Shown piece after piece: positions 9,300-51,257 of a stretch of 64,000 bases of DNA. The position numbers and the translations under genes are program-made. Under the pieces are notes generated by a model. The model saw only the letters and a program-made list of their open reading frames with translations. It was not told the DNA's origin and did not search any database. The stretch is from Selaginella moellendorffii (Eukaryota; Plantae; Lycopodiophyta): contig NW_003314263.1 in the NCBI RefSeq assembly GCF_000143415.4, forward strand, positions 2,730,041 through 2,794,040, given 5' to 3'. Each line of letters begins with the position of its first letter. Positions within the stretch are counted from its first letter, which is position 1.

Positions 9300-10252
9300 A
9301 GGGGAATTTCAAATTTCGAGATTTTAAAAACCGTAGCAGTACACCTCTTAATAACATATTTCAAGGAGATCATTTGTTCTCCATTCTGCCTGCTGTTTTT
9401 ACTACTGGAGCTCTACAATTGAGTTTAATATTTATGCTGTGTATGTTCGGGTTGAATTCCACATTCAGAGTGAAGAGCGTTGATAGCACGCTAAGGATGA
9501 TTGTTTTAAAGCCCAACTAAAGCCTCCTCCTCCTCGACAGCTCCTCATTCCCTAGTGCCCTTAATCCTTGCTGCTCCAGTCTTTAAACAAAGTCAATCAT
9601 ATAATTTATTCTTATAAGCTGCTAGATCTGGAAGACATTCTTGTTAGCTTTTATTACAATATATTTTCATTCATTCATTCATACTATTTACAAGGTCTTG
9701 CAGCATGAGACCGGCAGATCAAATATGCCATAGTGACAATTGGTCATACCTGTTTGTCGTCTTCATCATGTTGTCATTCATTAAGGCTTTAGATGTTATT
9801 TTACTATATTCTAGTGATATCAATGCAAGGACTGAAGCCAGGTATTTTGCTAGTGAAGGAAGATCCTTCACTGACGTGGAGTCTAAGCTTGATTTATTGG
9901 ACAATTATGAGTTTGATTTTTAGAAGATATTTATATAATTTGTGAAATTGAATGAAATATTTTTATTAATAAATGACGCAATAAATATTTCCTAGATAAA
10001 AATTATAATATTATTTTATAAATTTAACTGTTTACAAAAGAAAAATTTATATATAAATTAATATTTTCAAATAATAATATTTATAACAAATTAATTTTTA
10101 AATCATAATAAAAATATTACATTATATTAAGATATTTAGATAATAAGTAAAGCAACAATAATATTTTATCTAAAGATTAAGACTCCTTTTGTTATTGTCT
10201 TTATCTATAGTGTCTACAGCTGATTCTCACTCTCTACTCAGGTAGTGTGGAG

Positions 10253-13200: not shown

Positions 13201-13253
13201 ATTCTAATAGGATAATACCAATATTAATAAACTAAGTTTAGCATTTGTATCAA
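10253..13253 (+). mobile_element. Degenerate Ty3/gypsy chromovirus-type LTR retrotransposon remnant
   Basis: 5' LTR TGTCATA(10253)...TATGACA(10642). 3' LTR starts TGTCATA at 12830 after a PPT (aaagtggggatgg). Both LTRs share agaagtgaaccccaaac. Integrase relic GFDNILIMANLFSKIIYFL (about 11230) and chromodomain relic PPSPPLKVIACEQEFEVAIILNSK...LYCLVNLLRY...FH**HP (about 12577-12785). The 3' end is approximate. Confidence 0.75.
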
Positions 13254-14504
13254 TATAAAGAAAAAAATCTAAATGTCTATTTAGCCAAACTTACTTAACT
13301 TGGTTTGCTAATTTTCTTTTGCTTTGTCTTGGATTGACTTTGCAAGAACCCTTGTATATTGAGCAGTAATCCCTCAATTCACTATATAATAGTTTACTAT
13401 CAAGGACTCTTATATGTAATATTTTCTTGGTTTCATTAGCTATATATGGAAGGTGTCTAGATTTGTTAATTAAACATATCTATGAAATGTGGAGAGCCTT
13501 CTAAACATGATCCCAAGTCCTAATTTATTATTTAACACTATTTCATATTTAATAAGTTTTCAAACTTATTCTAAATATTATCTTATAAGATTAAGGTGAG
13601 GCTATTATATAAAAGGGGTTTATAGGGGGTTCCAAATATATAGTAAAAATAGTGGTTGAAAACATGACTAATTTAGTTTTTATTATGTCACTCTTTATTG
13701 TGTGTTTAACTTAAGTTTAAGCCCCAGCTCCATACCATATTGCTCAGTGGGGCCTTGTATTAAGCCATCAGTATATTAAATTATGCTAAACTTCTTTACA
13801 CCATTTTGCATATAAAGGCTGAATATAAAGTGTTTGTGATCAGTTTTTTTTATTTTATAACACAATAAGCATGGAGTTTGGCTCCAAATTCATGTGTTAT
13901 ACACCAAAGAGCAATGAGTGAATAAGAAAGAAGAAGCCACTCATTTAATGTGTCTTAAAGACAATAGCTGGATTTGCTAGTTGGGAGCCTAGGCATTTAG
14001 AGGAGCTATTGCAGTGCAACTAGGATTTAGAGCTAGGAGACTGTTCTCAAATTCTTCTACTACCAGGTGAGGCTGGTTTTCAAATCCTAGTGGAAGAGCC
14101 CCAGTAGGAGGCACAAAGAAGTTAATAAAAGAGCATGTCTAGGAATTTGGCAAATAATAAAAAGAAACAAAAAAAGAGAAGCGATAGAAAGAGAGGACCA
14201 AGTAAGCCAAGGAGAAGAAACTAAAACTTGAATCTTATACCTTGGAGAGCATTGTTAGAAGTACCTTTGCACCTTGTATCTACTCAAAGTTTGGAGTGAG
14301 GAGGAAGAGAAGGGGATGCATTGCCCAAGAGATGAAAATGTGATGGTAGTGAGTGTAGAATGGAAGGTGTTGAAAGTGGAACTGGTGCTCAGTCTGGACC
14401 TTTATCACCCATGCCCGTAGAAAGGATGTCTCTAGCTTGCTTCTAGAAAACTCAAGATTTGCCATGTTGTGTAGGAAGAGATGGTAGACATATTCACCAG
14501 AAGT

Positions 14505-27596: not shown

Positions 27597-28284
27597 AAGT
27601 AGAGGGCCATTTCATTTTTCCCACTTAAAAGCAAAACCTCTTATGTCAAGTGATTGGAAATGTGGCAAAACTGAGTGGTGAGAGAGATCAACCAAGTGCT
27701 TCAACTCCTCATAGTATAAATTTTACGCTCTCAAAGAAGATTGCATCAGTAATATATATTTAATAAACATTTTAGAAACTATTTCCTTTTGTGATCCTTA
27801 ATATATCCTTTATGATATTAATAATTAATAGATAGCTTTTCACTTACTAATGTTTAGAGAGGTGATAAATGTTGATTTTTTATTTTTAATTTTCTTTAAA
27901 CTTAAACTAATAGTCCTCCTAATTAAAACAATATTACTGCTTGAGCATTATTGAGTGTTATTTGGAGTTATTTGTTTCTATTTTAAAAAAAGTATAACTT
28001 TTTTTAAAATTAATAAAAATTAATTAACCAATAAAACATAACTGATTTAACTTATAAAGATATTTATAAGCATTTTATTTTATATACTTGGTTATATGTT
28101 AATAACAAAGATAAAAACAATAAGTAAATAACAATATCCAAAATACTGAAAAATTATATGTGAAATAAATATTAGTGTGCTTTAAATATAACTAAAAATA
28201 ACAACATTCAAACATTTGAAGCTTAAATAATTTTTCAAAATAATTTATCCCTTTGTAAAATTATAAATATATATATTTGAATAC

Positions 28285-28847
28285 TGTAAAATTTGTAAAT
28301 ATATAAATATGTATATACATGTATTACCTTGCCTAGGTAATACACAAATTATAGTACTAAAGCATATGGATTGTTAATTTGGGTGGTCCATTCATTCTTG
28401 TATATAAGCAAGGGTTTAAACAATAATTAATATATCTATTTCTATATTTTACACACTCACATCAATGGAAGTGAGACACACTAGAATTTGTTCTTGAAGG
28501 ACAAAGCTTTTTAATAATGCTTTGCTTTAGTATTTGGGATCTTGTTTTTTGTTTTCATTCATTTATTCTTTCTTAGATTTAAATCTATATTAGCCTTTTG
28601 CAAGATAACTTGTAGAATAAATTTTACAAATACTAATATTTTAAAATATTAATTGAATTATATATATATATATATAACTAAAAGATAGTAGAAATAAAAC
28701 CTTTTCTCACTTTCAAATAAGATGTTTCAAAGAACAGTTGACATATAAAATTCTAAATTTAAAATAGTAAAACATAAAAGTATATATATTTTATAAACTC
28801 TCCCATATATAGTTGTTAAAATAATTTTTATTACAAATTTCTAAATG

Positions 28848-28924
<77 letters not shown>

Positions 28925-29945
28925 TTTATAATCTATAAAAGGTTATTTACTGTGATTTCATTCTTAAAAATGGTTAATGAAATCTAGACGTGTGCGAATT
29001 TAAATTTCAAAACAAATATAAAAGATAATAATTAGGTAGTATTAAATTTTTTTATCTTATAAAACAATATTAGATTAATAACAATTTCAAAATGGTTTAT
29101 AAACATATTAATTATCAATCATAAATAATAAAGTAAATTATTTTGTATAAAAATATTTTTTAAACTAATTTAATATTTACATAAGCTTTTATATGATATT
29201 TTATTGTATAAACATACTTTCATTTTTATTTATAAGTAAAATAATGGAATGTATATTATATAGAAGCATAAGTAACTAAAGATAAATTTTTAAAAATAAT
29301 TAAATATTTAATTAAGAAAAAAATTTAGAAATGATTTATTAAATTTTAATACATACTTAATTTGAAAATTCATTTTTTATAAGAATGATATTTTAAAACA
29401 TATTTAAATGTAAATAATTTTTTATTTAAAATTTTGAGATTGTAATTATAAAATGTTATGTTTTAATATTTAAGTAGGGTATTGTAATGCTTGATGATCC
29501 AATTTTTAGCACTTAATAAAAATAAATGACTAAATAAAATAAATAATCTTGATATTGTGTGTGTTCAAGATATAGGAATAGGTATATTAATTTGGGTTTA
29601 GACCCCTGCTTATATACAAAAATGGATGGACCAAATTTAGTCCTAAATTTACGGTCGATATGCCTTAATACTATAGTTAGTGAATTACCTAAGCAAGTTA
29701 ATACATGTACATACATATATATATTTACAAACTTTACACATATGAGTGTTTGGTATATAGAAATAAGTATATTAATTTGGTTTTAGACCCCTACTTATAT
29801 ATAAGAATGGATGGACCAGATTCAATCCCAAGTTAACAGTTGATAATTAGTATTAATGTTAACTATAATTAGTGTATTACCTAGGCAAGGTAATACATGT
29901 ATCTATGTATATATATTTATAAACCTTACACCATCCTCCCCTCTG
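28285..29945. mobile_element. Three copies of a ~185-bp LTR-like repeat (28285-28464 on +; 29550-29738 and 29741-29930 tandem on -) with an adjacent PPT
   Basis: Shared core tacatgtattaccttgcctaggtaatacac...ggtccattcattcttgtatataagc; TG...CA-type ends; the minus copy is preceded by the purine tract agaggggaggatgg (29931-29944). Confidence 0.6.
28850..28921. repeat. (TA)n microsatellite, about 36 units
   Basis: Uninterrupted TA run. Confidence 0.97.
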
Positions 29946-32900
29946 AAAGATAAAAAGATGATGATAATAAGTTAGGTGGAACATCTAGAGATTTTGTTGG
30001 GTAATTATAAATTACCATAAGAATCTAAAGCTCTACAAAACCACTAACAAAGTTGTTGATAACTATGACTGAAATAAAACCCAAAGCCATAACATAAATA
30101 TTAGCCAATTACGGAGTCTCAGTGAATCAATTACAATTTTGTATACAGTTCCCAAATGCTCAAACCAACCACATAACTATAACTTTGAACTAAAGCAAGG
30201 GATATTGAGAACCATTATAGTTCATAAAACACCATTATAACAAATAATACATCTTATTTCTAAATTTGTCTGTCGACAATCCTCCAAGACCACCATTAAT
30301 TCAAACTTAAGACCATAAGCAGAATAACTATTGTCCTCATTTAGCATCGCATATAAAAGGTTGGACTCATTTTGTTCGTCCTTTATATCCTCCTTATCCC
30401 TTCCTTGAAGGAAAAAAATTCTGAAGCACTAGCTCTATTTGGACTTGCTACGCTTATCCTCTCTTTGCTATTTATGTTTAGATTATCACATTTGTTCGGC
30501 TTCACTATGTCTATAGCACATATGGTTTTTACCCTTTTTACCCTTTATCTTATGTATAGGATAATTATGAAGCAGAATCTAAACTTTCTATATGCTATAT
30601 GCCACATGTTTAAAGGACAATAAAGTGGAACATAAGTTTCAAGACTTTGAGCCACTAAATGAAGGAATAGAGCTAAACTCCTAAGCATGGAGCCGAGGAA
30701 CACGGAGTAACTCTTAAGCATACAGCCCAAGGAGTGAAGGGAGAAGAGCATAGTTTAACATTTCAATGCCAAAACTAGCACACAAAATGAAGTCAAATGA
30801 AATTTGGTGTTATTTCAACATACCGGTGGTTTAAGTGAGGATATAAGTACTCCATTAGCTAGTATGGTGTGAAACTTAGGCTTTGACTCAATCCAGACGC
30901 AAAACAAAGATAAACACAAAAGTGAGAGTTAAACTATGCCCAGATAGGACTGCCATACCTAATTTACCCACCTCTATTATACATTTGGAACCACTCTGGC
31001 CCCCCCCTCCCCCCCCCCACACACACGCTTTGGGCTTTCACCCTTAGCCATCTTTAGTACTAAGTGTTAGTCTCTAGGACTAACTTGAATAATAAATTCA
31101 TAAAATTATATATAAATTAGATATTCCTTTAAGTTTTTAATCAAAATCAAGTATAGTTTTATTAGCAACAATAATAATAATGGAAACTAATTTTAACTTA
31201 TAAAATAAATACTTGAAATTTCAACTATTAAAACTCTCAAAGTATTATTTTTAATTTTAGGTGGGAAGGTATGTGGAGGAATGCTTGGTGATGTACTCTT
31301 TTTTTAGTTGAGTTAAAAATTATTTTTCTTTATCATATTTTAATTACATAAACTTTTCATATTTGCTATTTTTTTCATGATAGAATATAACTTTTCCATC
31401 ATTAATATATTTTTATATTTTTAAATTCTATCAATTTATTTCACTCTTTCACATTCCATTACAATTATCAAAATCACCATACTATCATGCACCATAGTAA
31501 ATAATATAACCCATGTAAATTGAAGACAATTTAAATTTTAGATACTGTAATCTGAATACTTTGAACTTTTAATTTTAGTCAAACTTTTGTTAATAAGGAA
31601 AGGACCTTTTATATAGTTAGAAATTGTCACAAAAATCTCGAGAAGGAATGTGACAATGGTGCATGCGTCCATGCTCACAATCATGAGCATATGGGCCACA
31701 TGGTCCATACCGCCCGCAGTACAATCAATCGGGGCCACGAGGAAGAGAATGAATGGCCAACGACAAGCCCCTGTACGGCAGAGATTCCGGAAGATAGAAA
31801 GGAGAACCTCTCCATTGTTTTATGTTGTTTTCCACCGCTGGCCGAGAAACTTTCACGACTATATGTTGCGATTCCAATGTTGGTACAGGAAAAAAAAAGA
31901 ATTCTCGTTCACTTGTGAGTGAGAGGCCCCACCCTCTCCCCCCTGGAGAGAAAATTCGTCTTTCCGTACAGCCATGGGGTTACGTTCCATGCGAGCTGGG
32001 ATGAATCAGTGGGATCATTCGTAAGAGACAAGCAAAGCAAAGCAAGCCTCAGCTTTTGGCACCTCTCTCGAGACAACGTGGTCATAGAAATTTCTAGACT
32101 GTACGGACGAGACCACTTAAGCTATGGTTTTGGGCGATCTTATGAGCTTGATCGCCCTGTCCGACTCGGGAGTTTATTTCGTATCTCAATGAAAGCCAAA
32201 AGAAGAGAGGACTGTAGTAAATGTAGCCACTGGCATGGTTTTTATTGGAGGAAAAAGGACAGTGGTCGTGCAAATCGCTAAGCATGAGATGGGGGGAATG
32301 GAAAGATCAAAAGTTTGGAGAACTCTATGCTTAGTTTGGTGAAGTGTTGCTGTTTCTCGTATTGATTGATCGATAGTAGACAGTAGGTGGGTATTGCTGG
32401 AGCTGTATAAAAGTACCTATCATCACAAGCAAAAGAACAAGCTTGGACGACCAAGCTGTGTATCATATCCAAATCCAACGAGGAAGAAATTGTGGAGAAA
32501 TACGCATATTTCTTATCAGCTTTTTCCAGAGGAAAAAGAGAACAAAAGCTCCTCGTTTTGACAGTGGTTTTTTTTTCTCTCTCTCTCTCTTTTCCTGGTC
32601 CAATCCGAGTTGAGCGAGATGGAAAGAGACCTCGTCATGGCGTTTCTCATCTGCCTCGTCTTTGTCTTTTATTCTCAGGGAAGAAGAAAAGAGAGAGAAG
32701 AGCTATGGAGAGAGATGGAGAAAACGGGGTTATAGGCTATAGCTATCCTATACTACGTCCATAGAAAATACATTCTTTCACTCTTCCCATCTAGCCGATC
32801 GATCCCTCTTTTCTCGTCCTCCCGAGAAGCAATCGATCGAGATCAAACTATAGCTCCTCATCTGTCATTCTCTCCTCGAGGAGCTCCATCGCTCGGACCT

Positions 32901-35818: not shown

Positions 35819-37500
35819 TCAGTGGTGATTACCATGGATTCTAAGATATCCTCGAGAGACTTTGCACTCTGACTTTGTCATGCATGGCCTCTCCTTTCCA
35901 TTGATCTTCGCGCACTCCAGTGCCAACTTTACTGCCCGATACAAAGGCTCCGGTTTCAAAGGAAGTGAAAGTCTTGGATCCAGCACCGAGTTCCACTCGT
36001 CTTGTTCGACCAGCTCAATCGCCCATCTTTGAAGATCAGCATAAAACTTTCTATTGCCTTCTTGCCAGAAAGTAGCTCCAGAAGAACCACCCCAAAGCTG
36101 TAGACGTCGCTCTTTATGCTCAGTTTGACGGAGTAGCCATTGCACTCGGGATCCAAGTAACCCGATTTGCCTTGAGGTTCGTCTAACGATAGTCCAAAGT
36201 TTGACACATGAGCATTCCACTCGTTATCAAGGAAGATGTAGGCTGCGTCCATATGAATGATCTTGGGCCTCGCGCAAACCTGTGCAGCTATCATCCTTGT
36301 CCCATAACTCTAAAAGTGCCGGACAGTTGGACATGAACATATTGTCACAAAGCGTCCTCAAAGACTTCCTCAATGCAAAATCCAACCAATTATACTAGAC
36401 AAGAGTGGTGATTTCTGGAAACAAACGTTTCTTCAAAGAGTTTACAAGTAATAAAGAATTACCTTTTAGAAATACTGCCCATTTTCACGTCTCAAAGGAA
36501 CCTCTTCGCTGTGGCTGCAAAGTCTTCAAAGGTTCTTGTGGAAGTCTTTGAGGACGGTATATGTAACTGTTTGAAGAGGTTCCTGTTTGAAGACCTGAGG
36601 TTTGAAGACTTTAAAATGAGTTTCGCTACTAACTTCAGCTTTAATCTCCATTGCACTGCTGGGCTTTCTTTTCCAAACATAAACCCAAATTCCTAAGAGA
36701 ACGACACCAAAGACGAACATAGCAACAGTTACATATACTGTCACCTTGATGATTGTTTTCTTCTTCCTCACAACTTCCTCCTGGGAATTCTTATATTTCA
36801 GGAAAAGAGGCGAGCATGCGCATTCGGAGTCTAGAACACTCCCAGTCCCACATGTGGAACACTCCAAGAAAACTTTGTCTGAAAACGATGGAGACAACAC
36901 CTTCAACGTAGAATTGAGCTCAAACTGGTTCTTCCCACACTCGCTTGTGCACATTCTAGCACTACCAAAGTCTAGCAATGGTTCACTAGTCAGCCGAGTT
37001 CCCCCAGCAAACAGCCCTGCTGAAATCACTGAAAACTGAGTTTCGGAAGGAGCCTGGAGTTGCGCTAGACCATCCTGACCCCAGCATACCACCCCGCGGA
37101 CACACACATGGTACAGTCACGTAAGAAAACCTGTAACCTGAAGGAGCAATGGAAGAAGCCGAATCAAAGCTTGGCAACCCGCATATCGTACGAGATCCCA
37201 TAGACACCGACGCGAACTTGTGAGGTTGATTGAATGGTTGCTTGATCTACAGCACCCCAGCAATGTACCTCTCCTGCCTGAGAGACACAAGAGGCTGGAT
37301 GAAACCGAGAAAAACTCTAGCTCAGAGCTTGGAAACTCGTCAATCGCCCAGCACTCAACCCCATTGTCGTTTTTACTAATCGCATGATAGGCACCGGAGC
37401 TCAAGCTTACATAGCCTACATTCTTGAACTCAGCATATTGCGAAGTGAGAACCATACGCAAGCCCGCATGCGAATCGAGCGCCTCCTGAGATGGCAAAGA
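35819..37500 (-). pseudogene. CRINKLY4/ACR4-like receptor kinase pseudogene
   Basis: Crinkly/RCC1-like repeats (SLSSGAYH, VECW, GSRTICGL, VVCWG, FSVISAG), Cys-rich TNFR-like stretch, TM, and kinase pieces (FLDNEWNAHVSNFGLS, GYLDPE, KSDVYSFGVVLLELLSG) spread over several frames. Confidence 0.75.
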
Positions 37501-38037
37501 ATTGCCTGTCTAGTGGTGGAGAGAATTTCTTGTCGTTAGAGATCTAGCTTGCAATACACACAGAGAATAAGAACCTTGGCTTGGAATAGGGAAGTTAATC
37601 CACACGGAACTTAGCTTATACCTTGAGAAGAGCTGATTAATGTAGGTAGAACCAACAACCACTAATCTAATTTGTAGAATATGGAACCTTCGTCAAGCAT
37701 ATCGCGACGATCTCTTGCAAAGATCTCTTATGGACAAATTGGTTGTATCAATAACTGAGGTGCTACAGCGTCCATGTAAAAACAAAGAGGTTTGGAGCTT
37801 TTACCTTGGATGATTTCGAAAATTCAGAACTTCACAAGTTTTCGTTATTGTGGCCGGCTTACATATGGCACGTAAAGATTTTATGTTCGTAGTTTGTTTC
37901 TTTCATTGCTGTAGCTTTATCATGAACTAACATTTCCACAGTGTGCCAAAAGATCTAACATCGGCGAGCTCGGACAGAGTTGCGTGACAATGGGATAGAT
38001 CGGTTTTATAAGAGGCTAATGATCCATTCGATGTAAG

Positions 38038-39942
38038 ATGTTGCTCCAGTTCCTATTCCTTACACTTGAACTCGTATCGACTGATACCATTGCTTTTGGC
38101 AGCTCAATTCGATCTGACAATGCTAATCTAACATATCATGGAGGAAGGCTCATGGTTGATCCGATCACGATCTACGTTACTTGGGTTGGCCCCTGGTCGG
38201 AGAACTCCAAAGGAGCTCTTCGCAACGCCATCCGATCTCTTTCTTCCTCGGATGATCACAGACCTTCAGAGCTCCCGACCTTGTCCGGGTGGTGGAAAAT
38301 CGCGACGCAGTACAATGACTCCAATCAAAGGCCAGTTTCTAGCAAGATCTCCTTGTCGACAACCGAGTGCTATGTCAGTATCGCCAACGCGTCAGTCGAG
38401 CTGATAGAATCCACCGTCTCGAAGCAATGCAGCGATGTTCTTCCGGAAGACCCAAATGGGATCTATCACGCAGTCGTCGGCAGCGATCTGGACAGCACGG
38501 GAGTCTACAAATGCTTTGGGAAATTTGAAGGGAATGGTGGCGGAAGAACTTATCTCTTTGCTCGGCAGCCGAGAGAAGACGAGTACTGTAACTTATGGCG
38601 TCGGTTTGGAGGACTTGCGGAGGCACCGAATGGTGACACAGGTTTGGACTCGTTGATCAGCAGAGTTCTAGCCAGCAGCGCCGAGAGAGCTACAAACATC
38701 GACACGATCGGCTGGAAGGACGATTCCGGAGGAACTATCAGCTCCTTGTGTCCGTCTCCAACGGGACTCACCGATGGAAACAGTCCCGTGATCGAGGAGA
38801 ATGGCGTGAGCTGGAACTTGGTCGGGATAAATGGCTCACGGTTCCTCGTCCAGCAACTTTGGAGCCGAGAGAACAGCAATTGTGCTCTCCAGATCATTGG
38901 TAAGTCGTGGCCATGAGTGTGCATGCATGAATGATTTCACGTTGTTTGCTTGTTCGTACAGCGAAATGCCGCTCCATCAAACCGGTTGACAAGCCAAGAG
39001 GCCTGATAAGCGAGGGCTTGATCGTCAACCACAGCGTTGGCTTGCAACCATATCCTCCTGCAAGGAATTGCCTGTGGCTCCTAGACGTTCCAACAGCGAA
39101 GATCTTCCGTGTGACCGTGAACTTCATGGTTCTAAGCATCACAGACAAGCTCAACTTCTACGAGTGTCCCATATTGCCGCGTGCTTCCGGCCGAGTTGAT
39201 AGTTGCGAGGTGCTAAGATCCATGACTGGTGCTAGCTCTCGGATCGTCCTTCCGGACTTCGTTCCCACAAACTTGATACTCGAGTTTAAAACAAGCGCGG
39301 ACGAACAAGCGGCTGGTTCTCTGGGCTGGGAGATCGAATACAAAGCTGGTAAGAACATCATCTTCTAGTTTTGTTTCTGGAAGAAGAAAAAAGCTCTGTT
39401 TTTTTCGTCCTCCAGGATTCTGCAATGGAACCACTGTGGCCTCCGCCCGATCGGGCTCTATATCGGATGGAAGTCCCGAGGGATCGAAGTACTTGGGCTT
39501 GCGCGAGTGTAGGTGGGTCTTAAACGCGAAAAAAGGCACCGAAGTCCGGCTAAAGTTCACTCGTTTCGACACGATCCAAGGCCGAGACGTCCTCACTGTC
39601 TATCAAGGAAACGACAAGCTCCGGGGCTCCATCTTGGAAAGCTTCTCGGGACGCTACTCCATTCTTCCAAACCGGACGTATAGCGGGCCAGTGTTGCTGG
39701 TTTTCACGACCCAAACCGGTGATGGCGATGGCTGGGCCGCGAACTTTGAGATGGATCATCCAGAATCGGAGTCGCAGCGTCGATCTTCCAGGAGAAACTT
39801 GGTCGCAATTATCTCTGGAGCGTCGTGCTTGATGGGACTCTCGTGTTTGCTCTGTGGAGCGTGCTTGATCCGGCGCTCTTATAGTGAAACTACTGCTAGT
39901 GAAACTACTACTAGAAATCCATGTAATGTCATTCTATTTTAA
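38038..39942 (+). CDS. PHI-1/EXORDIUM-CUB-CUB-TM protein, kinase-less (copy 1); exons 38038-38899, 38962-39348, 39416-39942
   Basis: YHGGRLMVDPITIY..W.G.W, PTLSGWWK, APNGDTGLDSLI, SWNLVGINGSRFLVQQLW (PHI-1 pattern); two CUB-like repeats (GSISDGSP..YL...CRW...VRLKFTRFDT...DVLTVY.G); TM, then a stop. Confidence 0.75.
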
Positions 39943-39965
39943 CCAAATAGAGTTAGGGTTTTACA

Positions 39966-41235
39966 ATGGCAGCTTCGTCTCCCCCGGCTCTGCGATGGCG
40001 CCTTCTCAAGCGATCGCTGCTCCGCTCGAAATCTGGTATGTTCTTGAGCTGGATCGGCTCCCACATTGTCCAGACTTGCAATGCCGCAGATGAGATTGAC
40101 GAGGAGGCTGCGAGGGTATCCAGAGTCCCGTCCGGGAGCTTTGGCCTGATCGCGAGCCGCTGCGTGGAAGATAACGAGGAGATCGATGGTATTCTGTGGG
40201 AGTACACGCTCCCGGATGAGCGGACGACTGCATTGCTGATGAGGTTTGGAATTTTTTCTCGATCGCTTTGTTTGTTCTCATTGGTGAATTTTCTTCCTGT
40301 AGGCAATCACGCAGCGGCCAGTTTAAGCTTAGCGATCATTCGAGCTGTAGAGAGCTCGGCATTGACAACACTGGTGTTATTTGTAAGTGGAGATTTCTAT
40401 TCTTTTTCTTAAGTGAAGATCACAAGCTTTTCATAGGTTTGTGGCCAGCTGAAGAGATTCTTGCTTACTATTGCGTTTCACGACCGGAAATGTTTAGGTA
40501 CGTGATATCTCGCTCTTCCATTTCTTTTTCCATCCAATTCCAATCTGTGGGTAGCGTTTGGATTGACAGGAACAAGAGGATTATAGAACTTGGTGCTGGA
40601 TATGGATTAGCGGGACTAGCATTGGCAGCTTGTACCGATCCTGCCGAAGTTTTAATCACGGATGGCAACCCGAAGGTTGTGAATTGTATCCTATAATACT
40701 TTTGCCGCCTCTCTTTTGGCTCCTTGACTTCCGTCCTGGCAGATATCCAGAAAAATTGCAGACTGAATGCCGAGCTGTTTGGGAAGACTAAAGTCAGCTC
40801 AGAGGTTTTGTACTGGTGCAAAGAGCCAGTACCTCTGGACTCTGAATTTGATTTTATTATTGCTGCTGACTGGTAAGAGACGTTCCTCATGACAGATGGG
40901 ATTTGATGGATGCTTTTTTTCTGTGGCTTAGCACTTACTTCAAAGATTTTCATCTCGATCTGGTGCATACTATCAAATCGATTTTGACACGTACAATGAC
41001 TTCCGAGGCTCTACTTTTCTGTCCTCGCAGAGGTGAAAGCCTTTTCAAATTTATTGAGATTGCAAAATCTGCTGGTCTGGCTGTTGCCGTCAAGGAAGTA
41101 TATGATGCTGATATTTACAAGCTGCACAAGGAGTTTTTGCAAGCCGAAAATACGCAATGGTTAAATTATGATGCAGACCACAACTATCCTTTACTTATTT
41201 CTCTTACTGGTATGGCCAACGTTTTGACTGGATAA
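39966..41235 (+). CDS. CaMKMT: Calmodulin-lysine N-methyltransferase
   Basis: LRWRLLKRSL, SFGLI, IDNTGVICLWPAEEILAYY, IIELGAGYGLAGL, ITDGNPKVV, FDFIIAADCTYFKDFH, YDADHNYPLLI. Confidence 0.9.
40686..40742 (+). other. Probable U12-type (minor spliceosome) GT-AG intron in CaMKMT
   Basis: Donor GTATCCT; branch point TCCTTGAC (40721-40728) close to the AG; splicing restores VVN|YIQKN. Confidence 0.75.
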
Positions 41236-41526
41236 TTTGCCTTGCTTGTGTCCTAAGGAAATCACATGCTTGAAAAGTCTGAAGGTTTGTTTCATCGACG
41301 TTCTGTGCATGCGACAAGTTTGCATTCTGTTTTCTGCGTGGCTGTTTGTCCCGTCATAACTTGTCTTCTACCTTGTTAACACCTAGATTTTGCAGATGAA
41401 GCTGCAGTGACAAACATTTATACATTGGTGAGCTCGGACACTGCTGCGAGCCCATCGTGTTGATCGTAACACGGCATGGCTTTTACATGAGGACTAGGAA
41501 GGGAGGCTTTTGAAACTCGAAGAGGT

Positions 41527-44218
41527 ATGATGGCTAAGATGCCGCTTGAAGCTCTTGTGCTTTCAGTGCTATGGGTGGGACTTGCTAATTTATCGATGGC
41601 TTCTGGCAGCACCATTCGATCTGTTATTGGTAGCAACGGTTTTGCATACCAAGGGGGAAGGCTTATGGTTGATCCTATCACGATCTATGTTGCTTGGGTT
41701 GGCCCCTGGTCGGAGCACTCCAAAGAAGCCGTTCGCAGCGCCGTCATATCTCTGTCCGACGACCGGCCTTCTGAATTCCCAACACTGTCGAAGTGGTGGA
41801 GAATTGTGACACAGTACAACGACTCCAGTCAGAGGCCAGTTTCCGGTAACATTTCCTTGTCGAGAATCGAGTGTTCTGTTAGTGTCGGCAACGCCTCCAT
41901 ACAGTTGATGAAATCTGCCGTCTCCAAGGACTGCTTCTCCGTGTTTCCGGAAGACGCAAATGGGATCTATCACGCAGTCATTAGCAAGGAGCTGGACAGC
42001 ACAGGTGTCTACGAGTGTTCAGGACGGTATATAGATGCTGGTGGAAACAGAACTTATCTATACACAAGGGAGCCTCGACCGGACGAGTATTGCAACTTCT
42101 GGCGCCGTTTTGGAGGGTATGCTGGGCCGCCAAATGGAGACACGAGCTTGGACTCGTTAATTAGCGCAGTTTTAGCCAGCAGCGCTGAGAGGGCTACAAA
42201 CACAGAGTCCGATGGCTGGAACGACGATTCTGGGGATACGGTCAGCTCCAAATGTCCATCGCCAACGGGGTGGGCTGATAAAAATGGTCCCGTGATAGAG
42301 GAAGACGGCGTCAGCTGGAACTTGCGAGGCATAAACGGCTCGCGGTATATCGTGCAGCAACTGTGGAGCCAGAAAAACAACAATTGTGCTCTTCAGATCA
42401 TAGGTACTGTCTTGTTTAGGTGATAGAACTGATCTTGTATAACTAATCTTTCTTTGCAGATTATTGTCATGAGCCGGCAGTCCTGAACAAGCCAAGAGGC
42501 CTGATAAGCCAGGGCTTGATTATAAACCATAACGTTGGTTTGCAGCCATATCCACCAGGTCTTGATTGTATGTGGTTCCTCTCTATTCCGCACTCTAAAG
42601 TCATTCGTATGACTGTCAACTTCATGGCTTTAGGCGTTAACGACAAGCTGAACTTATACGTGTGTCCTATATCGAGCTTGATACTCGGCAGAGAGGTTGA
42701 TTGTGACATGATAAAATCTATGGCTGGGACTAGTACTCAAGTAAGCCTTCCGGATGTTGTTCACTCGAATCTGCAGCTTGAGTTTAAGACGAGTGTCAAG
42801 CAAACACCTCTCTCCATGGGCTGGGAATTAGAGTATAGAGCTGGTAAGCTTATTTCTTGCTATTTCTTCAGAAACTCATCAATACGATTTGTTCAGGATT
42901 CTGCTTCGAGACCATTACCACTACCGATCGTTTTGGTTTCATATCAGATGGAAGTCCTGATGGAGCGCAGTACCTGGGTATGCGTGAGTGTAGTTGGCTC
43001 TTCAAGGCAAAACCAGGCAGCAATGTCCATCTTCAGTTTACTCGTTTCGATACAGTGCAAGGGAAAGACTTGCTTACTGTTTACCAAGGAGACGCTAAGC
43101 GCAGCGACTCTATTTTGGAGGTCTTTTCGGGACGTTATTCCGTTCTTCCAAACCGGACTTACGTTGGACCTCTACTGTTGGTGTTTTCAACGGAAACTGA
43201 CGACGGTGATGGCTGGGCTGCAAACTTCCAGATGGAGCACCCGGATTCAGGTTCACACGGTCCATCTTCCAGGAAAAACTTACTGGCCGTAATACTTGGA
43301 GCGCTCTCGGGAATGCTGTGTTTGATTGGCGGGGTCTGGTTGATATTGCGCTCGTGCAAGTACAACATTGGTTTCAGCCTGACTAGCAGACAGTTTTCAA
43401 GAGCAGAGCTGGATGCTGCGACCAGCAACTTCTGCAAAGAAAAGCTGGTTGCACCGGATATGTTCAGAGGAGTTTTGCCCAACCAGCAGCTCGTTCTGAT
43501 ACAACGGTGCATGCGTTCGTGCGAGAAGGAATTCGAGCTTTTGTCAAGGATCAAGCATTCCAACGTGGCCTCCGTCTTGGGTGTCTGCTACGACATCAGC
43601 GAAAGCTTCCTCATTTTCAAAGACATGTGCCACAGCTCCGTCTTCAGCCATCTCTTTGACGACGACAAGTGCTCGGCTCTTTCGTGGGAACGCAGGGTGA
43701 AAGTTGCTACGCAAGTCGCGAGAGCTCTGGGATACTTGCATACGTTTGCGGAGCCTTGCGTGGTTCACCGGTCAGTGAGCTCCATCAACGTCTACCTGGA
43801 CGGTTCCTGGAATGCCAAGCTCGCGGGATTCGGCAGCGCTTTGAGTGTACGTTCCAGGAGCCAGGAACTCAAGCTGAAAGCCGAAGACGTTTACAGGGTG
43901 GGAGTTTTTATCTTGGAGCTGCTCATGGGACAGAGTGCTTTGAACGCAGAAGAGGACCAGCCAACAGTCGTTGCCCGCTGGGCTGTTCATGTTATCGACA
44001 CAGGGTCCGGCTACGAAATTTTGGACAGGAGGTTGGAGGTGCCATGCGAACGAGAAAGAAGTGCGCGAGCTTTGCTGAAAATGGCGGAGATAGGTGCCTG
44101 GTGTATGAAGGACAAGCCGGAGGACAGACCGAACATGATGGAGGTGGCGGCGGTGTTGGCGCAGGTGGAAACTATTTTCTTTGGTCAATCCAAGCGGCAT
44201 AGTAAGCGTCCAGGCTGA
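41527..44218 (+). CDS. PHI-1/EXORDIUM-CUB-CUB-TM-pseudokinase receptor (copy 2); exons 41527-42403, 42460-42843, 42897-44218
   Basis: Spliced frame is continuous. PHI-1 motifs, two CUB repeats, TM (LLAVILGALSGMLCLIGGVWLIL), and a kinase fold with HRSVSSIN and AGFG. Confidence 0.85.
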
Positions 44219-44423
44219 ATCTACTCGAGGACAAAGCTCACTCGAGGATTAAAGCTATTGTTTTGGACGATCTTGCAAAGTCGCTGCCAGTCTGTCGATT
44301 ATGCTTTTCGGCCTTGGTGCTTCCACCGGTCGAGCAAATTATTACGAGGTAGCTTGCACTGTTTAAATTTTCTTTTGTTCTGAATTCTCATGTGAGTTCT
44401 TGGTGTTTTGTTTCTCCAGGACT

Positions 44424-47264
44424 ATGGGCACTGCTTTTCATGTTCTGTGGCTGTTATTACCAGTCATTACAAGATCGGCTTGGGGTTTTTATGAGGATTT
44501 CCCAGCGGCTGACAGGAATATCTACAACGAGACTTATGCTTTCCGCATTCTTGCCCGACATGGAATCCAATCCCCGGCAGAGACGTCTTCCTTTGAATAC
44601 AAGGGTGGTCGTTTACTTGTAGAGCCCATCACTGTCTACTTCTTCTTTATCGGTAACTGGACTAAGCACGCCAAGCAAGCAGTTCGTTATGCAATTCTTT
44701 CGCTTAATGACGAGTCACCCGGCAAGCTTGACAGAAACAATACAGGGTATCCGACACTCTCGAAATGGTGGAAGGTTGCCACTCAGTACGCCGACGCTAC
44801 CTCTCGGCCTGTCTCGAGCAGTATTTCGCTCGGCAGCGAATGCTCACTCAGTTTACGGGAGCTCGAAATGCCAAAGCTGCTGGGAACTTTTGCACAGGCG
44901 TTCAACCGCTCCTCTCCAATTCAGGCAAACTGCACTAAGGTGTTTCGGGCAGAAAACACTGCAGTATATCACGTCCTCTTCAGCAAGCACGTTACATTTC
45001 TGCGTACCGGTAAAGATTTTCTCCCTTTCACGAACTGTGCCGGCCGCGCCAGTTTGTTCCGAGTCGACGAATCCGGGCCAAAGATCAGCTTGGCTTGGGT
45101 GAAAGTGCCCTTTCACAAGGAATACTGCAACCTGGTGACAAGGTTTGGAGAGTCTTACACGCCTCCGAATGGAAAGAGTGGCGGTCTCGACTCACTAATC
45201 AGCAAAGTTCTGGCACAAACTGCCGACATGGCTACCAACTGGGACTTCAAAGGATGGGTGGCGTCAAGCAACTCACAAACTTCGGTGGCTCAACAATGTC
45301 CTTCTCCAACCGGCTCGGAGGACTCCGTCATGCCCGTAATTCATGACCGCGAGAAGATGATAAGCTGGAATGTCTACGGAAGGAATGGAGCGCGCTACCT
45401 CGTTCAGCAGCTTTGGAACCAGGATCAACGGAACTGTGCTCTCAAACCTCTCAGTACGTAACCCCGACAGGCTGTCGTTTAATTTTCTCCTTTTTTCTTT
45501 CTTTTTTGCAGGATCATGCCAAGGCAAACGGAAGCTAACGACAGTCACGGGAACTATTATGGTTAGTCTTATTGTGGATTCAACTCCTGGCGCGAAGGTT
45601 GGCTTGCAGCCTTACAATTCGAACCTTCATTGTCAGTGGACCGTGAGTGTCTCCAACGCAGTTCACATACGCATCCACCTGAACTATTTGGCCCTTGGCC
45701 CGGGTGATACAGTGGAAATTTCTTACGAGTGCAGACACAGAATTTGCAAGAGGATCGTGCTAAAAGGCTATTCACCTGGAAAGAAGCTAGTCGATGCAAA
45801 GGGTGCAAGTTTTCACATCAACTTTACCAGCGGATCACAAGCTTCTCCCAACAGAATGGGTTGGATGATCAGCTACAAAGCAGGTGATTTGTCAGCGTGG
45901 TTTAAACTTTTTAGCGATAAAAATACTTCCATTTTGCAGGCTTTTGTAAACGCAGTGTTGATGTACGCCAGGCAAGAGGATCGATCAACGATGGCTCTCC
46001 AAAAGGCGTCAAGTATATGAAGGGCTCAAACTGTTCGTGGCACTTCCATGCACTGCAAAACAGTAAGGTCCGGCTTTACTTCACCAGACTGGAAACCATT
46101 GCAAGCAGCGACATGATTCGAGTCTACCACCCTGACCATCACAAGGTCCTTGCAGAGTATTCGGGAAAAGCCGAGCTCCCACGTCAGGCATTCAAAGGTC
46201 CTATAACGCTGGAATTTTCCAGCCAAACAGGAGACGGCGATGGTTGGGCTCTAAACTACGTGATGGATTCTCCACAAACTACTACGCAATTGTCATATAC
46301 AGCTAGATCTGCGGCAGTGACTGCACTGGGAGCTGTATGTGGTGTGTTCGTACCGGGTGTGGTCTTCCTTGGAGCTGTGGTTCTTTGCTGCAACTTTTCG
46401 GTCCTTCCGGTCAAACGCTCAAAGATCCAGCCAAGTGAAGAAAAGCCGCGACTCCACACAAGAAGACAGTTTTCGCTGGAAGAGCTCCGAGAGGCGACCA
46501 TGGATTTCTCTCCGGCGAATGTGGTGTCAGACTCAGATGGAAACGTTTTCCGGGGTACCTTGCAAGACGGTCGTGTTGTTGTCATAAAGAAGAAGGTGTC
46601 CGAGCTTGAGCTTGACATCTTGTTGCGCATTCGCAGTGCAAGCATCGTCAACCTGGTCGGCTTCTCGTCCGACGCACAGCAGAAGTGCCTTGTCTTTGAC
46701 TACATGCATCTCGGCCGCTTGTCTCGACGACTTTTCGACGATACGCTGCCTCCGATCAGCTGGGGGAACAGGCTTCGAATCGCTCTCCAGATATCCAGAG
46801 CAGTCGAGTACCTGCACACTTACGCCGAGCCACATATCGTTCACCTCAACATCAGCGCCGAAAATGTTCTCCTCGATGGCTCCTGGAATGCAAAGCTGAG
46901 TGGATTCGGCAGAGCTCAAAGCAGCAGCGTTGCCATCAAACCGGCTCTGAAGCTGCAAGACGTGTACAGCTTTGGCAGCCTGGTGCTCGAGCTGGTGACG
47001 GGAAAGGCTTCGAGCGATCGAAAACACAAGAGAGAAGCCTTGGCCGCGATAGAGGCAGGCATGGGACACACTATCATGGACAAGCGGCTCGAGAATGAAA
47101 ACCAGATTGCGAAGATGGGAGAGATCGCTGCGTGGTGCATGAGCGACAGTACGAGACAACCAAGCATGGTTGAAGTTTCTTCCACGTTAAGCCAAGTTAC
47201 CGCAATGGTTCTACGCTCGGCATCGAAGAAACAGCGTCCGCCACCTGGGAAAAGCAGAGACTAG
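44424..47264 (+). CDS. PHI-1/EXORDIUM-CUB-CUB-TM-pseudokinase receptor (copy 3); exons 44424-45453, 45512-45883, 45940-47264
   Basis: Signal peptide MGTAFHVLWLLLPV; YKGGRLLVEPITVY, PTLSKWWK; CUB repeats; TM; kinase fold with HLNISAEN and SGFG. Confidence 0.85.
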
Positions 47265-47469
47265 AAGCAGCAAAGCAACCTCAAGCTACAATGGGAAGCT
47301 GTCGTCGGGCCTCCTGAAGCGGCGTTCCTTTCGGTTTGTCCTCTTGTACCGGTATCTCGCCACTTGGAGCTTTCTTCTGAGTCCCCGATGCCGCGCTTAT
47401 AAAACAACAGTGCGTACAGGACATCACTGGATCAATTCTTTTCTCTGCTCGAGTTCCGGAAGCAGGGTC

Positions 47470-50273
47470 ATGCTGCTGCTCACGCTTGGTCTGTTTCTCG
47501 GCTTCATGGTGCTGCTTTCTTTCTGCTCGAGCAAGGTAGAGTTTTCTAGCACGAGTTTCCTCGTCGACGGGCCGGATGATACTCCGAAGAGTTCGGGTCC
47601 ACCATTCAGTCTCATAGATGTAACGGCAGTCCATTACCATGGAGGCAGACTGCTCGTGGAACCTATAGTGGTCTATCTCATCTGGCTTGGTCCGTGGGAG
47701 GACAAGTCCAAGGAAGCTCTTCGAAATGCGGTTCGCTCGCTCTCGGTTGAAAGTGGTGATGGACTGCCGGATCTTTTCAACTGGTGGAAGGTTGCTACGC
47801 AGTACACAGATGGGAACGGTCAGCCAGTTTCCAGTAATGTGTCGCTTGGCACGGTGGAGTGCTCGAGTTCTACGGCGTCAAACTTAAGCAGAGAAGCTCT
47901 CACTTCACTTATGCTCCAGGCTTTCAACGTCTCTTCTTCGCCGTCTGAAACGCCTCCGTTGTGCAGTTCAGTGCTCCCTCAAGATGAGACCGCGGTGTAC
48001 CATCTTCTCTTTAGCGAGAAGGTGTCCTTTTCAGAAGACTTCCACACATCTCTTTGCAGCAGGCGGTTTAGACTTTTCAAGGCTGAAGAAGTTGGTCCCG
48101 AGTTAAGCCTGGCATGGTCCCGGGAGCCAGGGGGGGCGGAATACTGCAACCTCTGGAGTTATTATCACGAGTTTCTTTCACCACCAAATGCGAAGGATAA
48201 AGGCCAGTTGGATTCCCTGATCAGCTCTGTGCTCGCACAAACTGTGTCCATGGCAACAAACACTGACTTCGATGGCTGGCACAGCAATCTATCTTCCACA
48301 GTCACGACCTTGTGTCCGTCTCCGACCGGTTTATCAATTTCTGCAAAGCCGGTGATTGACGACGGGAAAATCAGCTGGAACTTAAGCGGGATAAATGGCT
48401 ACCGGTACATGGTACAACAGATTTGGAGCGACAAGACGAAACTCTGTGCACTTCACTCATACGGTATGCCTCTCTCGTTCTCGCCTTTCTTCTAAACATT
48501 TGGACCTTTGACAGAACATTGCAAGGGATTGCGCGAGAGAAATGACTATCATGGGATTATAAGTGAAGGGCTGATTGTCAACCACAGTGTGGGACTCCAA
48601 CCTTACAGCCACGGCTTGCATTGCGAATGGCGAGTCAGCATGCCAGGGGCTGCTGTGGTACGCGTCAAGATAAACTACATGGCCATTGTGAAAAACGTCG
48701 ACTATGTCTACTTGCACTCGTGCTTTGCGCCAGTATATATCTACCGTTTGGATGCATGCTTGGAGAAAATGTATAGCGGGCTTGGCTCACCTCACCAGCT
48801 GGAACTCTACACTTCGGAGTTTCTTCTCGAGTTCAAAACTGGAAACAACCCAACCTTGACCGAGATGGGCTGGGACATCGCGTATCAAGCTGGTAAGCTG
48901 ACTTTCTTGCTTAAGGTACCGCCCTTACACCGAAGTGCTCACTTACTTTGTTCCTTTCAGGATTTTGCTTCGGCACAACAAGAGTGACAGAAAAAAGTGG
49001 TGTTTTAACTGATGGAACTCCCGAGAACGCGACTTATCTCGAACAGCATACTTGCGCTTGGTTTCTTGACGGCCCAAACGTGGAACTCGACTTCGTCCGT
49101 TTCGATACAGTTCAAAACCAAGACGAGCTTCTGGTTTACAGAGGTGACAAGTCTGACGTAGCGAACATAGTGAGAGTCTACACCGGAAGATACTCTTCGC
49201 TGCCTCGAGAAACTTTTCCTGGTCCAGTGCTGCTCGAGTTTCGAACTAAAACTGGGAATGGACGGGGCTGGGCTCTGAAGTACACGATAAAGCCTGCTGG
49301 TGGACTCTCGCCACCGGAAGATCCAGCAGTGATCATAGCAGCCGTGTGTGGAGGACTGGGAGGCATGCTCGTTGCAGGATTGATCGTTCTTACGTATATG
49401 CGGCGTGTGCTCTTGCTCTTCGACGACAACGATCGTGAGATGGAACGTCCATTGTTGCTGCCAAAGAACATTAAAGTCTTCTCTCCACAAGTTTTGCGAG
49501 AAGCCACCGACAAGTTTAGCTCCAGCAACTTGATATCCAGGGGACGCAGAGCGTGTGTTTACAGAGCTAAACTACCTGATGAACAGCAAGTAGTGGTGAA
49601 GAAGACGAAACTGGCACGCGACGAGCTCCTGGTGATCTCCAGCGCCAGCCATTTCAACATCGTTGGCGTCACGGGCTACTGCTTCAATCGCAAGGAAAAC
49701 TTCCTCGTTCTCGAATATGTCCCAAACGGTTCACTAGCGGATCATCTCTTCTCTAACGCTAGCACACTGGCTTGGAGCTCGAGACTGAGAATCGCGGTAC
49801 AGGTTTCCAGCGCTCTCGAGTTCCTCCATTCATACGTGGAGCCGAGCATCACCCACGGCCACGTGAGCTCAGACAACATTCTCTTGGACAAGTCCTGGAA
49901 CGCAAAGCTTGCCGGCTTTGGAAGCTCGCGGAGGAGCTGTGTGAAGAGGGTAGGCTCTCACAACTTCGGCCTCAAGGCGGAGGAAGTTTACAGATTCGGA
50001 GGCTTGGTGATGGAGCTAGTCACAGGGGACAGATCGAGCAGCAAGGCAAGACGGGCATGCGAGGTGATTGAATCTGGAAAGGAGGAAATGTTGGGCCTTG
50101 TTCTTGACAGGAGGTGTGGTAGCAACGACGTCACGGACAAGAGAGCAGTGCTAAAGCTGGCAGAAGTTGGAGCGTGGTGCATGACAAAGGAGGCCAAGGA
50201 GAGGCCAACAATGGTGGAAGTGGCATCGGCATTGAGACAGGTTCTTGCGATCTCCATGCGCTCCAGACGCTAG
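47470..50273 (+). CDS. PHI-1/EXORDIUM-CUB-CUB-TM-pseudokinase receptor (copy 4); exons 47470-48463, 48515-48892, 48961-50273
   Basis: Signal peptide MLLLTLGLFLGFMVLL; YHGGRLLVEPIVVYLIW; CUB repeats; TM; kinase fold with HGHVSSDN and AGFG. Confidence 0.85.
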
Positions 50274-50292
50274 CTATGGTGACACGCAGTTT

Positions 50293-51257
50293 TCATATCC
50301 GTCGTCGTGGTTTCTTCGGGGCTGGCTTGACGAGATCTTTATGGCCTTTGGCTGGAGCTTGGGAAAGCTGCAAGGCAGGCAATAGCAATCGCTCAGAGTG
50401 ATTTGAGACGAAGTTCTCACCTTATCCAGCTTCTCGCGGACGTTCTTCGCAGTAGCATTCATCGATGGCTCGGAGAAGTGCTGATAGCGAAGGTACCAAC
50501 AAGTTTTCGATTGTTGCTTGAAACTCTTGTCTTACCTTTGGGATTGGTGCTTCACAGGCCACTGAGAGAGGAAAGTGTGGCTCCGGTTGGAAACTTTCTA
50601 GCGGTGTGACGTCGAGAGGATCGAGCAGTCCTGTTTGGAGGCGCAATCGTCCATTCACATCCACGTCCTTGAGAACTGGGAGGCGGTGAGTCAAGAATGT
50701 TCCATTCTCTTCGAAACTCATCTCTTTCTTCTTTCTTTACCAGCTTTTCTCTCCACGACGTCCAGTCTGCGCGCTTCTAGTTTGTGCTTAGTGTCCGCCA
50801 AGCTCTCGTACTTTGGGGCGTAGCTCACTTGCAACAGGTTGCCAAAGAACTGGAAATCATCCAGGTTTCTCTTCGCAGCTCTGCGTTTGAGGATGTTACT
50901 CGCAAGGGAAGGAATGGAGAAATGGAAAGAGCGAGGCTACCGTGCGTGGGCGATATCAGCGAACTTGATCCAGTATACGTCGGTGTAAGGCTCGCATTCT
51001 TCGTCATCCAGGAGCAAGTACCTGGACGGCGCGTAAGGTTTCGAGGAAAAAAGAAAGAACGAGAGACTCTACTCTTCAATGTGGCCAAAACTTCCAAGCA
51101 ATTGTAGAAGCTCGCTGGAACAACCCAGCGCCGGGACGTTCTTGACAAGCATGTATCTGGTGTCTCACAAATTCATCCAAAGAAGAGCCTCACAAGATGG
51201 CTATTTCACTCACCTGGATTCATCGCAGACCGTGTACACTTTCACAGCTCGTTCCAT
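50293..51257 (-). CDS. RBM48: RNA-binding protein 48 (minor spliceosome RRM factor)
   Basis: Spliced reading MERAVKVYTVCDES/YMLVKNVPALGC...FGHIEE/...EPYTDVYWIKF...AR/AAKRNLDDFQFFGNLLQVSYAPKYES..DTKHKLE, ending KKPRRRI*. Confidence 0.9.

Follow-up and report, generated by a model that had tools for sequence, protein, structure and literature searches.

A tandem cluster of genes for predicted Phi_1-CUB-CUB receptor pseudokinases in Selaginella moellendorffii and its angiosperm relatives

Which proteins are encoded by a run of open reading frames (ORFs) that repeat in threes in the genome of the lycophyte Selaginella moellendorffii, and what might such proteins do? The run lies at positions 38038 to 50273 of a 64,000-nucleotide (nt) stretch of contig NW_003314263.1 (the window, to which all coordinates below refer; features are on the forward strand unless stated otherwise), and it comprises four genes of one family, here called c1 to c4. 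An earlier note on this DNA had read them as four paralogues with one three-exon layout, each encoding a signal peptide, a domain of the EXORDIUM/PHI-1 kind (Phi_1), two CUB-like domains and a transmembrane segment, with a kinase fold added in c2 to c4. Our favoured reading, which we hold with moderate confidence, is that c1 to c4 are four old tandem paralogues of a small family of the RLK/Pelle group (RLK, receptor-like kinase) common to the lycophyte and to angiosperms, and that the members of this family are non-catalytic, ligand-binding co-receptors with a dead kinase.

Splicing at canonical GT-AG sites gave four coding sequences without interruption. In the spliced models, the internal introns (8/8 GT-AG, 51 to 68 nt) are all in phase 1, and the exon for the first CUB domain (CUB1) is therefore a symmetric 1-1 exon. 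Gene c1, delimited by ORFs, the spliced model and Pfam, has exons at 38038 to 38899 (Phi_1), 38962 to 39348 (CUB1) and 39416 to 39942 (the second CUB domain, CUB2, and the transmembrane segment). Its intact frame of 591 codons encodes no kinase and ends in a cytoplasmic tail of about 24 residues, which gives it the form of a receptor-like protein. On the same evidence, c2 (860 amino acids, aa) has exons at 41527 to 42403 (Phi_1), 42460 to 42843 (CUB1) and 42897 to 44218 (CUB2, transmembrane segment and pseudokinase). The spliced model and Pfam place the exons of c3 (908 aa) at 44424 to 45453 (signal peptide and Phi_1), 45512 to 45883 (CUB1) and 45940 to 47264 (CUB2, transmembrane segment and pseudokinase), and those of c4 (894 aa) at 47470 to 48463 (signal peptide and Phi_1), 48515 to 48892 (CUB1) and 48961 to 50273. 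Within the last of these, Pfam and structure models locate CUB2 at 48961 to 49298, the transmembrane segment at about 49326 to 49400 and the pseudokinase at about 49506 to 50243. The c4 model is identical to the S. moellendorffii RefSeq gene LOC9661189 (894 aa), and c2 is likewise identical to LOC9661187, for which the RefSeq protein XP_002962589.2 begins at an internal Met (MVDP...) that lies 46 residues into our spliced c2 model. A second-haplotype scaffold carries the alleles LOC9648196 and LOC112349981, the latter being the c3 allele. The spacers between c2 and c3 (44219 to 44423) and between c3 and c4 (47265 to 47469) measure 205 nt each.

In the ectodomain, a divergent Phi_1 domain of the EXORDIUM/PHI-1 kind precedes the two CUB domains. 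Against Pfam gathering cut-offs of 25 bits for Phi_1 (PF04674) and 21.4 bits for CUB (PF00431), exon 1 of c1 to c4 matched Phi_1 at E values of 7e-25 to 2e-22 (80 to 88 bits), and the full-length RefSeq proteins and a full-length relative from Liquidambar matched it at 67.5 to 97.4 bits, covering profile positions 2 to 274/276. CUB2, encoded by exon 3, was found at E 1e-8 to 3e-4 in c1 to c3 (35.6, 34.5, and 21.4 bits) and at 1.4e-8 in full-length c4, with 35.5 to 52.1 bits in the full-length proteins, and thus reached or exceeded the cut-off in every copy. The match of CUB1, encoded by exon 2, was weak (E 2e-4 to 0.18), with 21.9 bits in c3 and 12.6 to 14.8 bits in c1 and c2. An AlphaFold model of the c4 ectodomain had confidence values of 60 to 75 for CUB1 and 83 to 93 for CUB2, and a Foldseek search of the Protein Data Bank (PDB) with the ectodomain model returned PCPE-1, neuropilin a1a2, cubilin, MASP and C1r/C1s over about 255 to 300 columns across both CUB domains (best E 5e-15); matches for the CUB pair in AFDB cover residues 312 to 553 of the model. 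Since the model aligns to structures of adjacent CUB domains across both domains, exons 2 and 3 both encode CUB folds. Of the Tyr/Glu/Asp/Asp calcium site that marks the ligand-binding subclass of CUB domains, a single candidate Asp (D491 in the numbering of ectodomain alignment A2) is invariant in that alignment.

The Phi_1 part was poor in the first ectodomain model, built from 19 sequences (predicted local distance difference test, pLDDT, 25 to 60), and a model of Phi_1 by itself, from an 80-sequence alignment, reached a pLDDT of 87.8. Its ten best matches among the Swiss-Prot AlphaFold models were Arabidopsis EXO and EXL1-7 together with PHI-1 from rice and from tobacco (E 1e-21 to 1e-11, TM-scores 0.57 to 0.76). 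Topology and localization were read from the sequence models by eye. Each of the four copies has a single hydrophobic segment, about 25 residues long, with basic residues behind it, and c3 and c4 begin with a hydrophobic N-terminal leader of the kind seen in signal peptides. The layout of a type-I RLK, i.e., signal peptide, ectodomain, single transmembrane segment and cytoplasmic kinase, is therefore predicted for c3 and c4, while c1 lacks the kinase and the leader of c2 is spliced away. The three-exon layout and the order of Phi_1, two CUB domains and a transmembrane segment that the earlier note had proposed were thus borne out by spliced models, Pfam and predicted folds, with Phi_1 and CUB recovered both as profile matches and as folds. 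Its further claim of a signal peptide in every copy held for c3 and c4, but failed for the main transcript of c2.

Exon 3 of c2 to c4 also encodes a kinase fold (Pfam E 1e-14 to 1e-20). In a phmmer search of the PDB, the nearest solved kinases were plant RLKs (the lectin receptor kinase 6cth at E 1e-27, CERK1, NFR5, and BAK1), followed by IRAK1 and IRAK4, which assigns the fold to the RLK/Pelle group. The motifs needed for catalysis have been replaced or lost: HRD reads HRS in c2, HLN in c3, HGH in c4 and HGN in the angiosperm relatives described below, DFG reads GFG in c2 to c4 and in the angiosperm members, and the glycine loop is absent. The VAIK Lys persists in c3 and c4 as well as in the angiosperm proteins and is Gln in c2; the catalytic-loop Asn is kept in all members. 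From GFG to subdomain IX there are 16 to 20 residues, compared to 38 in the canonical RLKs that these searches also retrieved, so that about 20 residues, with the activation loop and APE, are missing. Because the HRD Asp, the DFG Asp and the APE segment are all missing, the domain is classed as a pseudokinase, and the addition of a kinase fold in copies 2 to 4 and its pseudokinase nature, both proposed before, agree with the Pfam matches and the motif losses. As read from these motifs, the cytoplasmic domain lost its kinase activity long ago.

Relatives were sought with a Phi_1 profile built from the four copies, which was searched exhaustively against 1.84 billion representative proteins and gave 557 matches at E ≤1e-3. 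Next below the Selaginella proteins stood a Liquidambar protein of 871 aa, in which Pfam recognizes the same domains, and among these representatives only angiosperm or unidentified-plant members of the family (P0003 to P0006) lay between the Selaginella copies and generic Phi_1 proteins, the fragment P0007 aside. When the Liquidambar ectodomain was used as the query, about 25 angiosperm proteins of 800 to 1060 aa with Phi_1, CUB and kinase domains were retrieved, all named hypothetical or similar. Among others, they come from Amborella, Asimina, Dioscorea, Tetracentron, Liquidambar, Nyssa, Camellia, Actinidia, Ilex and Prunus, and further from Ziziphus, Trema, Castanea, Acer, Xanthoceras, Pistacia, Hevea, Punica and Quillaja, a spread that extends from Amborella to rosids and asterids. 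The combination of Phi_1, CUB and kinase that the earlier note had suggested querying across proteomes is thus found again in angiosperms, but for the same reason it is not restricted to Selaginella. A word-indexed protein search with full-length c4 returned c4 and generic RLKs only, and the one with ectodomain alignment A2 returned three Selaginella proteins only.

The angiosperm proteins resemble the Selaginella copies in more than domain content. Liquidambar formosana KAK9274295.1, a Prunus dulcis protein and Amborella AMTRI_Chr01g129700 have the same domain order, three coding exons and the dead-kinase motifs, at about 30% identity to the Selaginella copies over the ectodomain. The angiosperm members share HGN, GFG and the short activation segment, and in two seed-plant-like genomic contigs (Logan P0004 and P0005, which are exon-wise ORF calls) the introns interrupt the protein at matching positions. 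In a maximum-likelihood tree, the Selaginella copies formed one clade opposite an angiosperm clade, both with a support of 100, and the angiosperm clade roughly tracked species relationships with one gene per species. Together, the shared domains, exon layout, dead-kinase motifs and the tree suggest that the architecture and the loss of catalysis predate the lycophyte-euphyllophyte split. Judged from this tree, the Selaginella cluster is a lineage-specific expansion: each angiosperm species in the search results contributed one protein cluster (partial or fragment models aside), whereas Selaginella has four tandem genes on long branches, one of them kinase-less and one with its signal peptide spliced out.

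No member was found in Arabidopsis, Brassica, grasses, legume crops, Solanaceae, poplar or grape in the word-based search with the Liquidambar ectodomain, and absence from these plants is likely, though unproven given the limits of that search. Among reviewed entries, Arabidopsis has EXO and EXL1-7 only, and these are the only proteins of the Phi_1 kind known from that plant. Ferns, gymnosperms and bryophytes yielded no member among the top matches of the exhaustive representative search. One other protein, P0015 (914 aa, from a EukProt transcriptome), combines Phi_1, a transmembrane-like segment and a full-length kinase (Pkinase E 2e-40) and has no CUB domain; an EXO-like domain and a kinase may here have been fused independently, in a different lineage.

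Pairwise identity among the four copies is 38 to 41%, with c1 and c2 at 62%. Synonymous sites are saturated in every pair except c1/c2 (pN about 0.4 in the other pairs), and for c1/c2 we obtained a dS of 1.0 to 1.5 and a dN/dS of 0.14 to 0.22 per part of the ectodomain. The duplications within the cluster are old, and the proteins are under purifying selection. The long-term selection that the earlier note had seen in the open reading frames is supported by these dN/dS values and by frames that stay open over 860 to 908 codons despite saturated synonymous sites.

Many RNA runs, under two organism labels, hold 0.25 to 0.91 of the sampled words of the c2-c3 stretch. Contigs of four RNA runs from four studies reproduce exactly four internal introns, at 42404 to 42459 and 42844 to 42896 in c2 and at 45454 to 45511 and 45884 to 45939 in c3; the joining of the Phi_1 exon to the CUB and kinase exons, on which the earlier note's interpretation depended, is thus present in transcripts of c2 and c3. 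The same four runs all contain the joint of a 71-nt intron in the 5′ untranslated region (UTR) of c3 (44349 to 44419), which ends 4 nt before the ATG at 44424. A single RNA contig of 9.7 kb (X1) leads from upstream of c2 through c3 into c4, its loose end being c4 exon-1 sequence. This may reflect read-through transcription of the cluster, or overlapping UTRs that were merged by the assembler, a merge being possible because the spacers are only 205 nt long. RNA contigs also pass from the 3′ side of a methyltransferase-like gene (39966 to 41235) into the 5′ region of c2. In another RNA run of the species (X6), about 1% of positions differ across c2 and c3 (41400 to 47350), which fits the second haplotype.

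The contigs of all four runs also contain the joint of an 85-nt GT..AG intron at the 5′ end of c2 (41525 to 41609). Its removal excises the ATG at 41527 together with the signal-peptide codons, and the upstream frame, a short upstream ORF, stops 9 nt before the joint. Judged from these contigs, c2 is expressed mostly in a form that is unable to enter the secretory pathway. By comparison with the c2 sequence, c1 keeps a homologous donor and acceptor, which would delimit a possible intron at 38033 to 38102; its use would remove the ATG at 38038 and the signal peptide and would bring an upstream ATG at 38019 into frame. The 5′ intron of c2 (and its possible counterpart in c1) could represent unproductive or regulatory splicing that turns receptor production off.

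What, then, might these proteins do? We favour a type-I plasma-membrane receptor that would bind an extracellular partner, most likely a protein, a peptide or a wall-derived ligand, via its Phi_1-CUB-CUB module. Being unable to phosphorylate, such a receptor would pass its signal on through a partner, an active receptor kinase that it would scaffold or regulate allosterically, a mode that would parallel those of the plant pseudokinase receptors NFR5, BIR2 and SUB and of the animal CUB-CUB co-receptor neuropilin. Neuropilin, a single-pass, non-catalytic co-receptor, serves as our working analogy: the tandem CUB fold of neuropilin a1a2 and of PCPE-1 CUB1-CUB2 is the same as that of the Selaginella proteins (E 5e-15 to 2e-14) at an identity of 16 to 18%, although both animal proteins lack Phi_1 and a kinase fold. 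On the cytoplasmic side, NFR5/LYK5, BIR2, STRUBBELIG and CORYNE have, like c2 to c4, an RLK/Pelle fold that has lost the catalytic residues. The kinase domain of NFR5 can be aligned with that of the family over nearly its full length (E 6e-25), and NFR5 also lacks part of the activation segment. These plant receptors differ in carrying LysM or leucine-rich repeat ectodomains, where the Selaginella family has Phi_1-CUB-CUB, and in having known partner kinases.

Several observations weigh against the co-receptor reading. The mechanism is deduced from the architecture. The main transcript of c2, as represented in the RNA contigs of the four runs, has neither start codon nor signal peptide. Words of c1 are absent from about 17 listed RNA assemblies of the species, several of which hold c2 to c4, and part of c1 is held by three small runs of undefined kind only, so that c1, the kinase-less copy, is apparently silent in the available data. 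Half of the cluster (c1 and c2) may therefore be non-functional or condition-specific in expression, and it is c3 and c4 alone that seem to be both complete as receptors and expressed. The Phi_1 domain itself adds a further point. In the 80-sequence alignment, the Phi_1 domains of the receptor clade, from Selaginella and angiosperms alike, lack residues that are 84 to 97% conserved in other Phi_1 proteins: replaced are a Cys pair (A3 columns 310/384), the His of CGxH, the His and Glu of AHELxE, and Glu 472 and Asp 475 near the C-terminus. One subgroup of stand-alone Phi_1 proteins also lacks the AHELxE His and Glu and has kept the other conserved residues. The receptor Phi_1 may, on this comparison, not act like other Phi_1 domains, and, given these losses, a binding partner found for it need not apply to stand-alone EXO proteins.

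A different role for the same parts would be that of a negative regulator or decoy, in which the ectodomain traps either a ligand or free EXO-type proteins, the dead kinase holds partners such as SERKs inactive until release, as in BIR proteins, and c1 is a pure decoy. The conserved pseudokinase state and the existence of a kinase-less paralogue would suit such a role; however, the evidence does not separate a positive from a negative function, c1 expression went undetected in the RNA assemblies, and we regard this alternative as unlikely. Still more doubtful is the idea that the EXO-like domain is itself the signal, presented at the membrane or cleaved to act as a secreted EXO protein, with the CUB pair serving to dock. 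The domain can work alone, given that stand-alone EXO/EXL/PHI-1 proteins of 278 to 363 aa (Swiss-Prot) are secreted, and animal CUB pairs dock protein partners, as in PCPE-1 and neuropilin, both of which were matched here. Against a tethered or shed ligand, however, the receptor Phi_1 domains form a separate, divergent clade without the residues kept by the stand-alone forms, and neither a cleavage site nor a shed form is known.

We give very little credence to two further explanations. An atypical but active kinase with unusual catalytic residues could be argued from the VAIK Lys in c3, c4 and angiosperms and from the catalytic-loop Asn in all members, but the loss of both the HRD and the DFG Asp from every member and the deletion of about 20 activation-segment residues, including APE, speak against it. 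Equally improbable is that the genes are decaying relics, or that annotation has fused an EXO gene with a neighbouring CUB-kinase gene. The silence of c1 in the RNA assemblies and the removal of the c2 start codon and signal peptide by splicing would fit decay; on the other side stand the exon joints in RNA from four runs, the frames that have stayed open over 860 to 908 codons at saturated synonymous divergence, and angiosperm genes with the same fusion and the same exon boundaries. For c3 and c4, the relic or artefact explanation is refuted.

A separate lead concerns the origin of the Phi_1 fold, which resembles metzincin protease domains. No match of the Phi_1 model to the PDB was significant in Foldseek (best E 0.13), PDB sequences likewise yielded no match in a profile search, and the HEXXHXXGXXH zinc site and Met-turn that mark metzincins on a zincin fold are missing from Phi_1. 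Distant stand-alone Phi_1 homologues, some from Closterium and others from assemblies that are metagenomic or unidentified, have kept the AHELxE helix together with conserved acidic residues and a conserved His, all of which have been lost from land-plant EXO-like proteins and from the Phi_1-CUB-CUB receptors. Animal metzincins often carry CUB domains, and metzincin proteases with CUB domains (BMP-1/tolloid and ADAMTS13) are among the closest known systems. Given the consistency of the matches, the AHELxE helix in distant homologues and the CUB domains of animal metzincins, a dead protease joined to a CUB pair is worth testing. We tentatively propose, while thinking it unlikely, that the EXORDIUM/PHI-1 domain derives its fold from a metzincin-like protease and has degenerated, and that Phi_1-CUB-CUB is a plant counterpart of the animal protease-plus-CUB logic of tolloid/BMP-1 and PCPE, joined to a dead kinase. 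If true, the receptors, and perhaps EXO proteins generally, would act as pseudo-proteases whose binding partners in the apoplast are peptides or pro-proteins.

The Phi_1-CUB-CUB architecture is catalogued in databases and in one survey, yet it is uncharacterized. The Selaginella proteins and the roughly 25 angiosperm proteins are present in RefSeq and UniProt with their Pfam domains already computed. The metaRLK preprint, in which the RLKs of more than 500 plant genomes were surveyed, states that, within the 20 most populated multi-ectodomain combinations, CUB/Phi_1 alone is made up of "Pfam domains not characterised in RLK" and says nothing more on the pair (10.1101/2023.12.21.572927). Neither Phi_1 nor CUB is mentioned in metaRLK 2.0, and a 2024 RLK review does not mention a Phi_1-CUB RLK architecture. 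A search of the literature on plant "CUB domain" and "receptor-like kinase" turned up no paper that treats Phi_1-CUB-CUB, nor any functional study. The earlier note had not recognized the architecture among the described plant RLK classes; this is correct insofar as the mainstream RLK literature does not report it, but the proteins are in RefSeq and UniProt and were counted in the metaRLK preprint.

Elsewhere in the window, no further family copies were found by tblastn with the c2 to c4 models outside 38000 to 50300, where only two unrelated kinase genes were detected (at about 6.3 to 7.2 kb and 35.9 to 36.3 kb); the spacer at 39943 to 41500 was itself not checked for kinase remnants. Between c1 and c2 lies the methyltransferase-like gene (39966 to 41235), an unrelated, multi-exon gene of the lysine-methyltransferase kind (Methyltransf_16; ORFs and Pfam) outside the family. 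Just upstream of the cluster, on the reverse strand, a receptor-kinase-like gene occupies 35880 to 37500, with a transmembrane-containing ORF at 36526 to 37107 and kinase similarity at 35879 to 36309; its ectodomain had no Pfam match. AT-rich stretches were noted at 10001 to 14000 and 28001 to 30000 (GC 0.20 to 0.29), compared to a GC content of 0.45 to 0.55 in the rest of the window.

For some two decades, EXORDIUM/PHI-1 proteins have been tied to growth, carbon status and the response to brassinosteroids, and to our knowledge their biochemical function, ligand and partner are not known. The stand-alone EXO/EXL/PHI-1 proteins (PF04674) share the fold that forms, in the Selaginella receptors, the N-terminal module of a membrane receptor. 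An anciently conserved natural fusion of an EXO-like domain with two protein-docking CUB domains and a receptor pseudokinase can be read as a Rosetta stone, arguing that the Phi_1 fold acts at the cell surface in receptor-kinase signalling, and Phi_1-CUB-CUB offers a tractable bait as a single ectodomain. The apparent absence of the family from Arabidopsis would explain why it has been overlooked, and its study needs other species. Among fold matches in the PDB and AFDB, nearly all other CUB domains come from animals and bacteria, and the Phi_1-CUB-CUB receptors would stand as a clear example of paired CUB domains at work in the signalling of plants.

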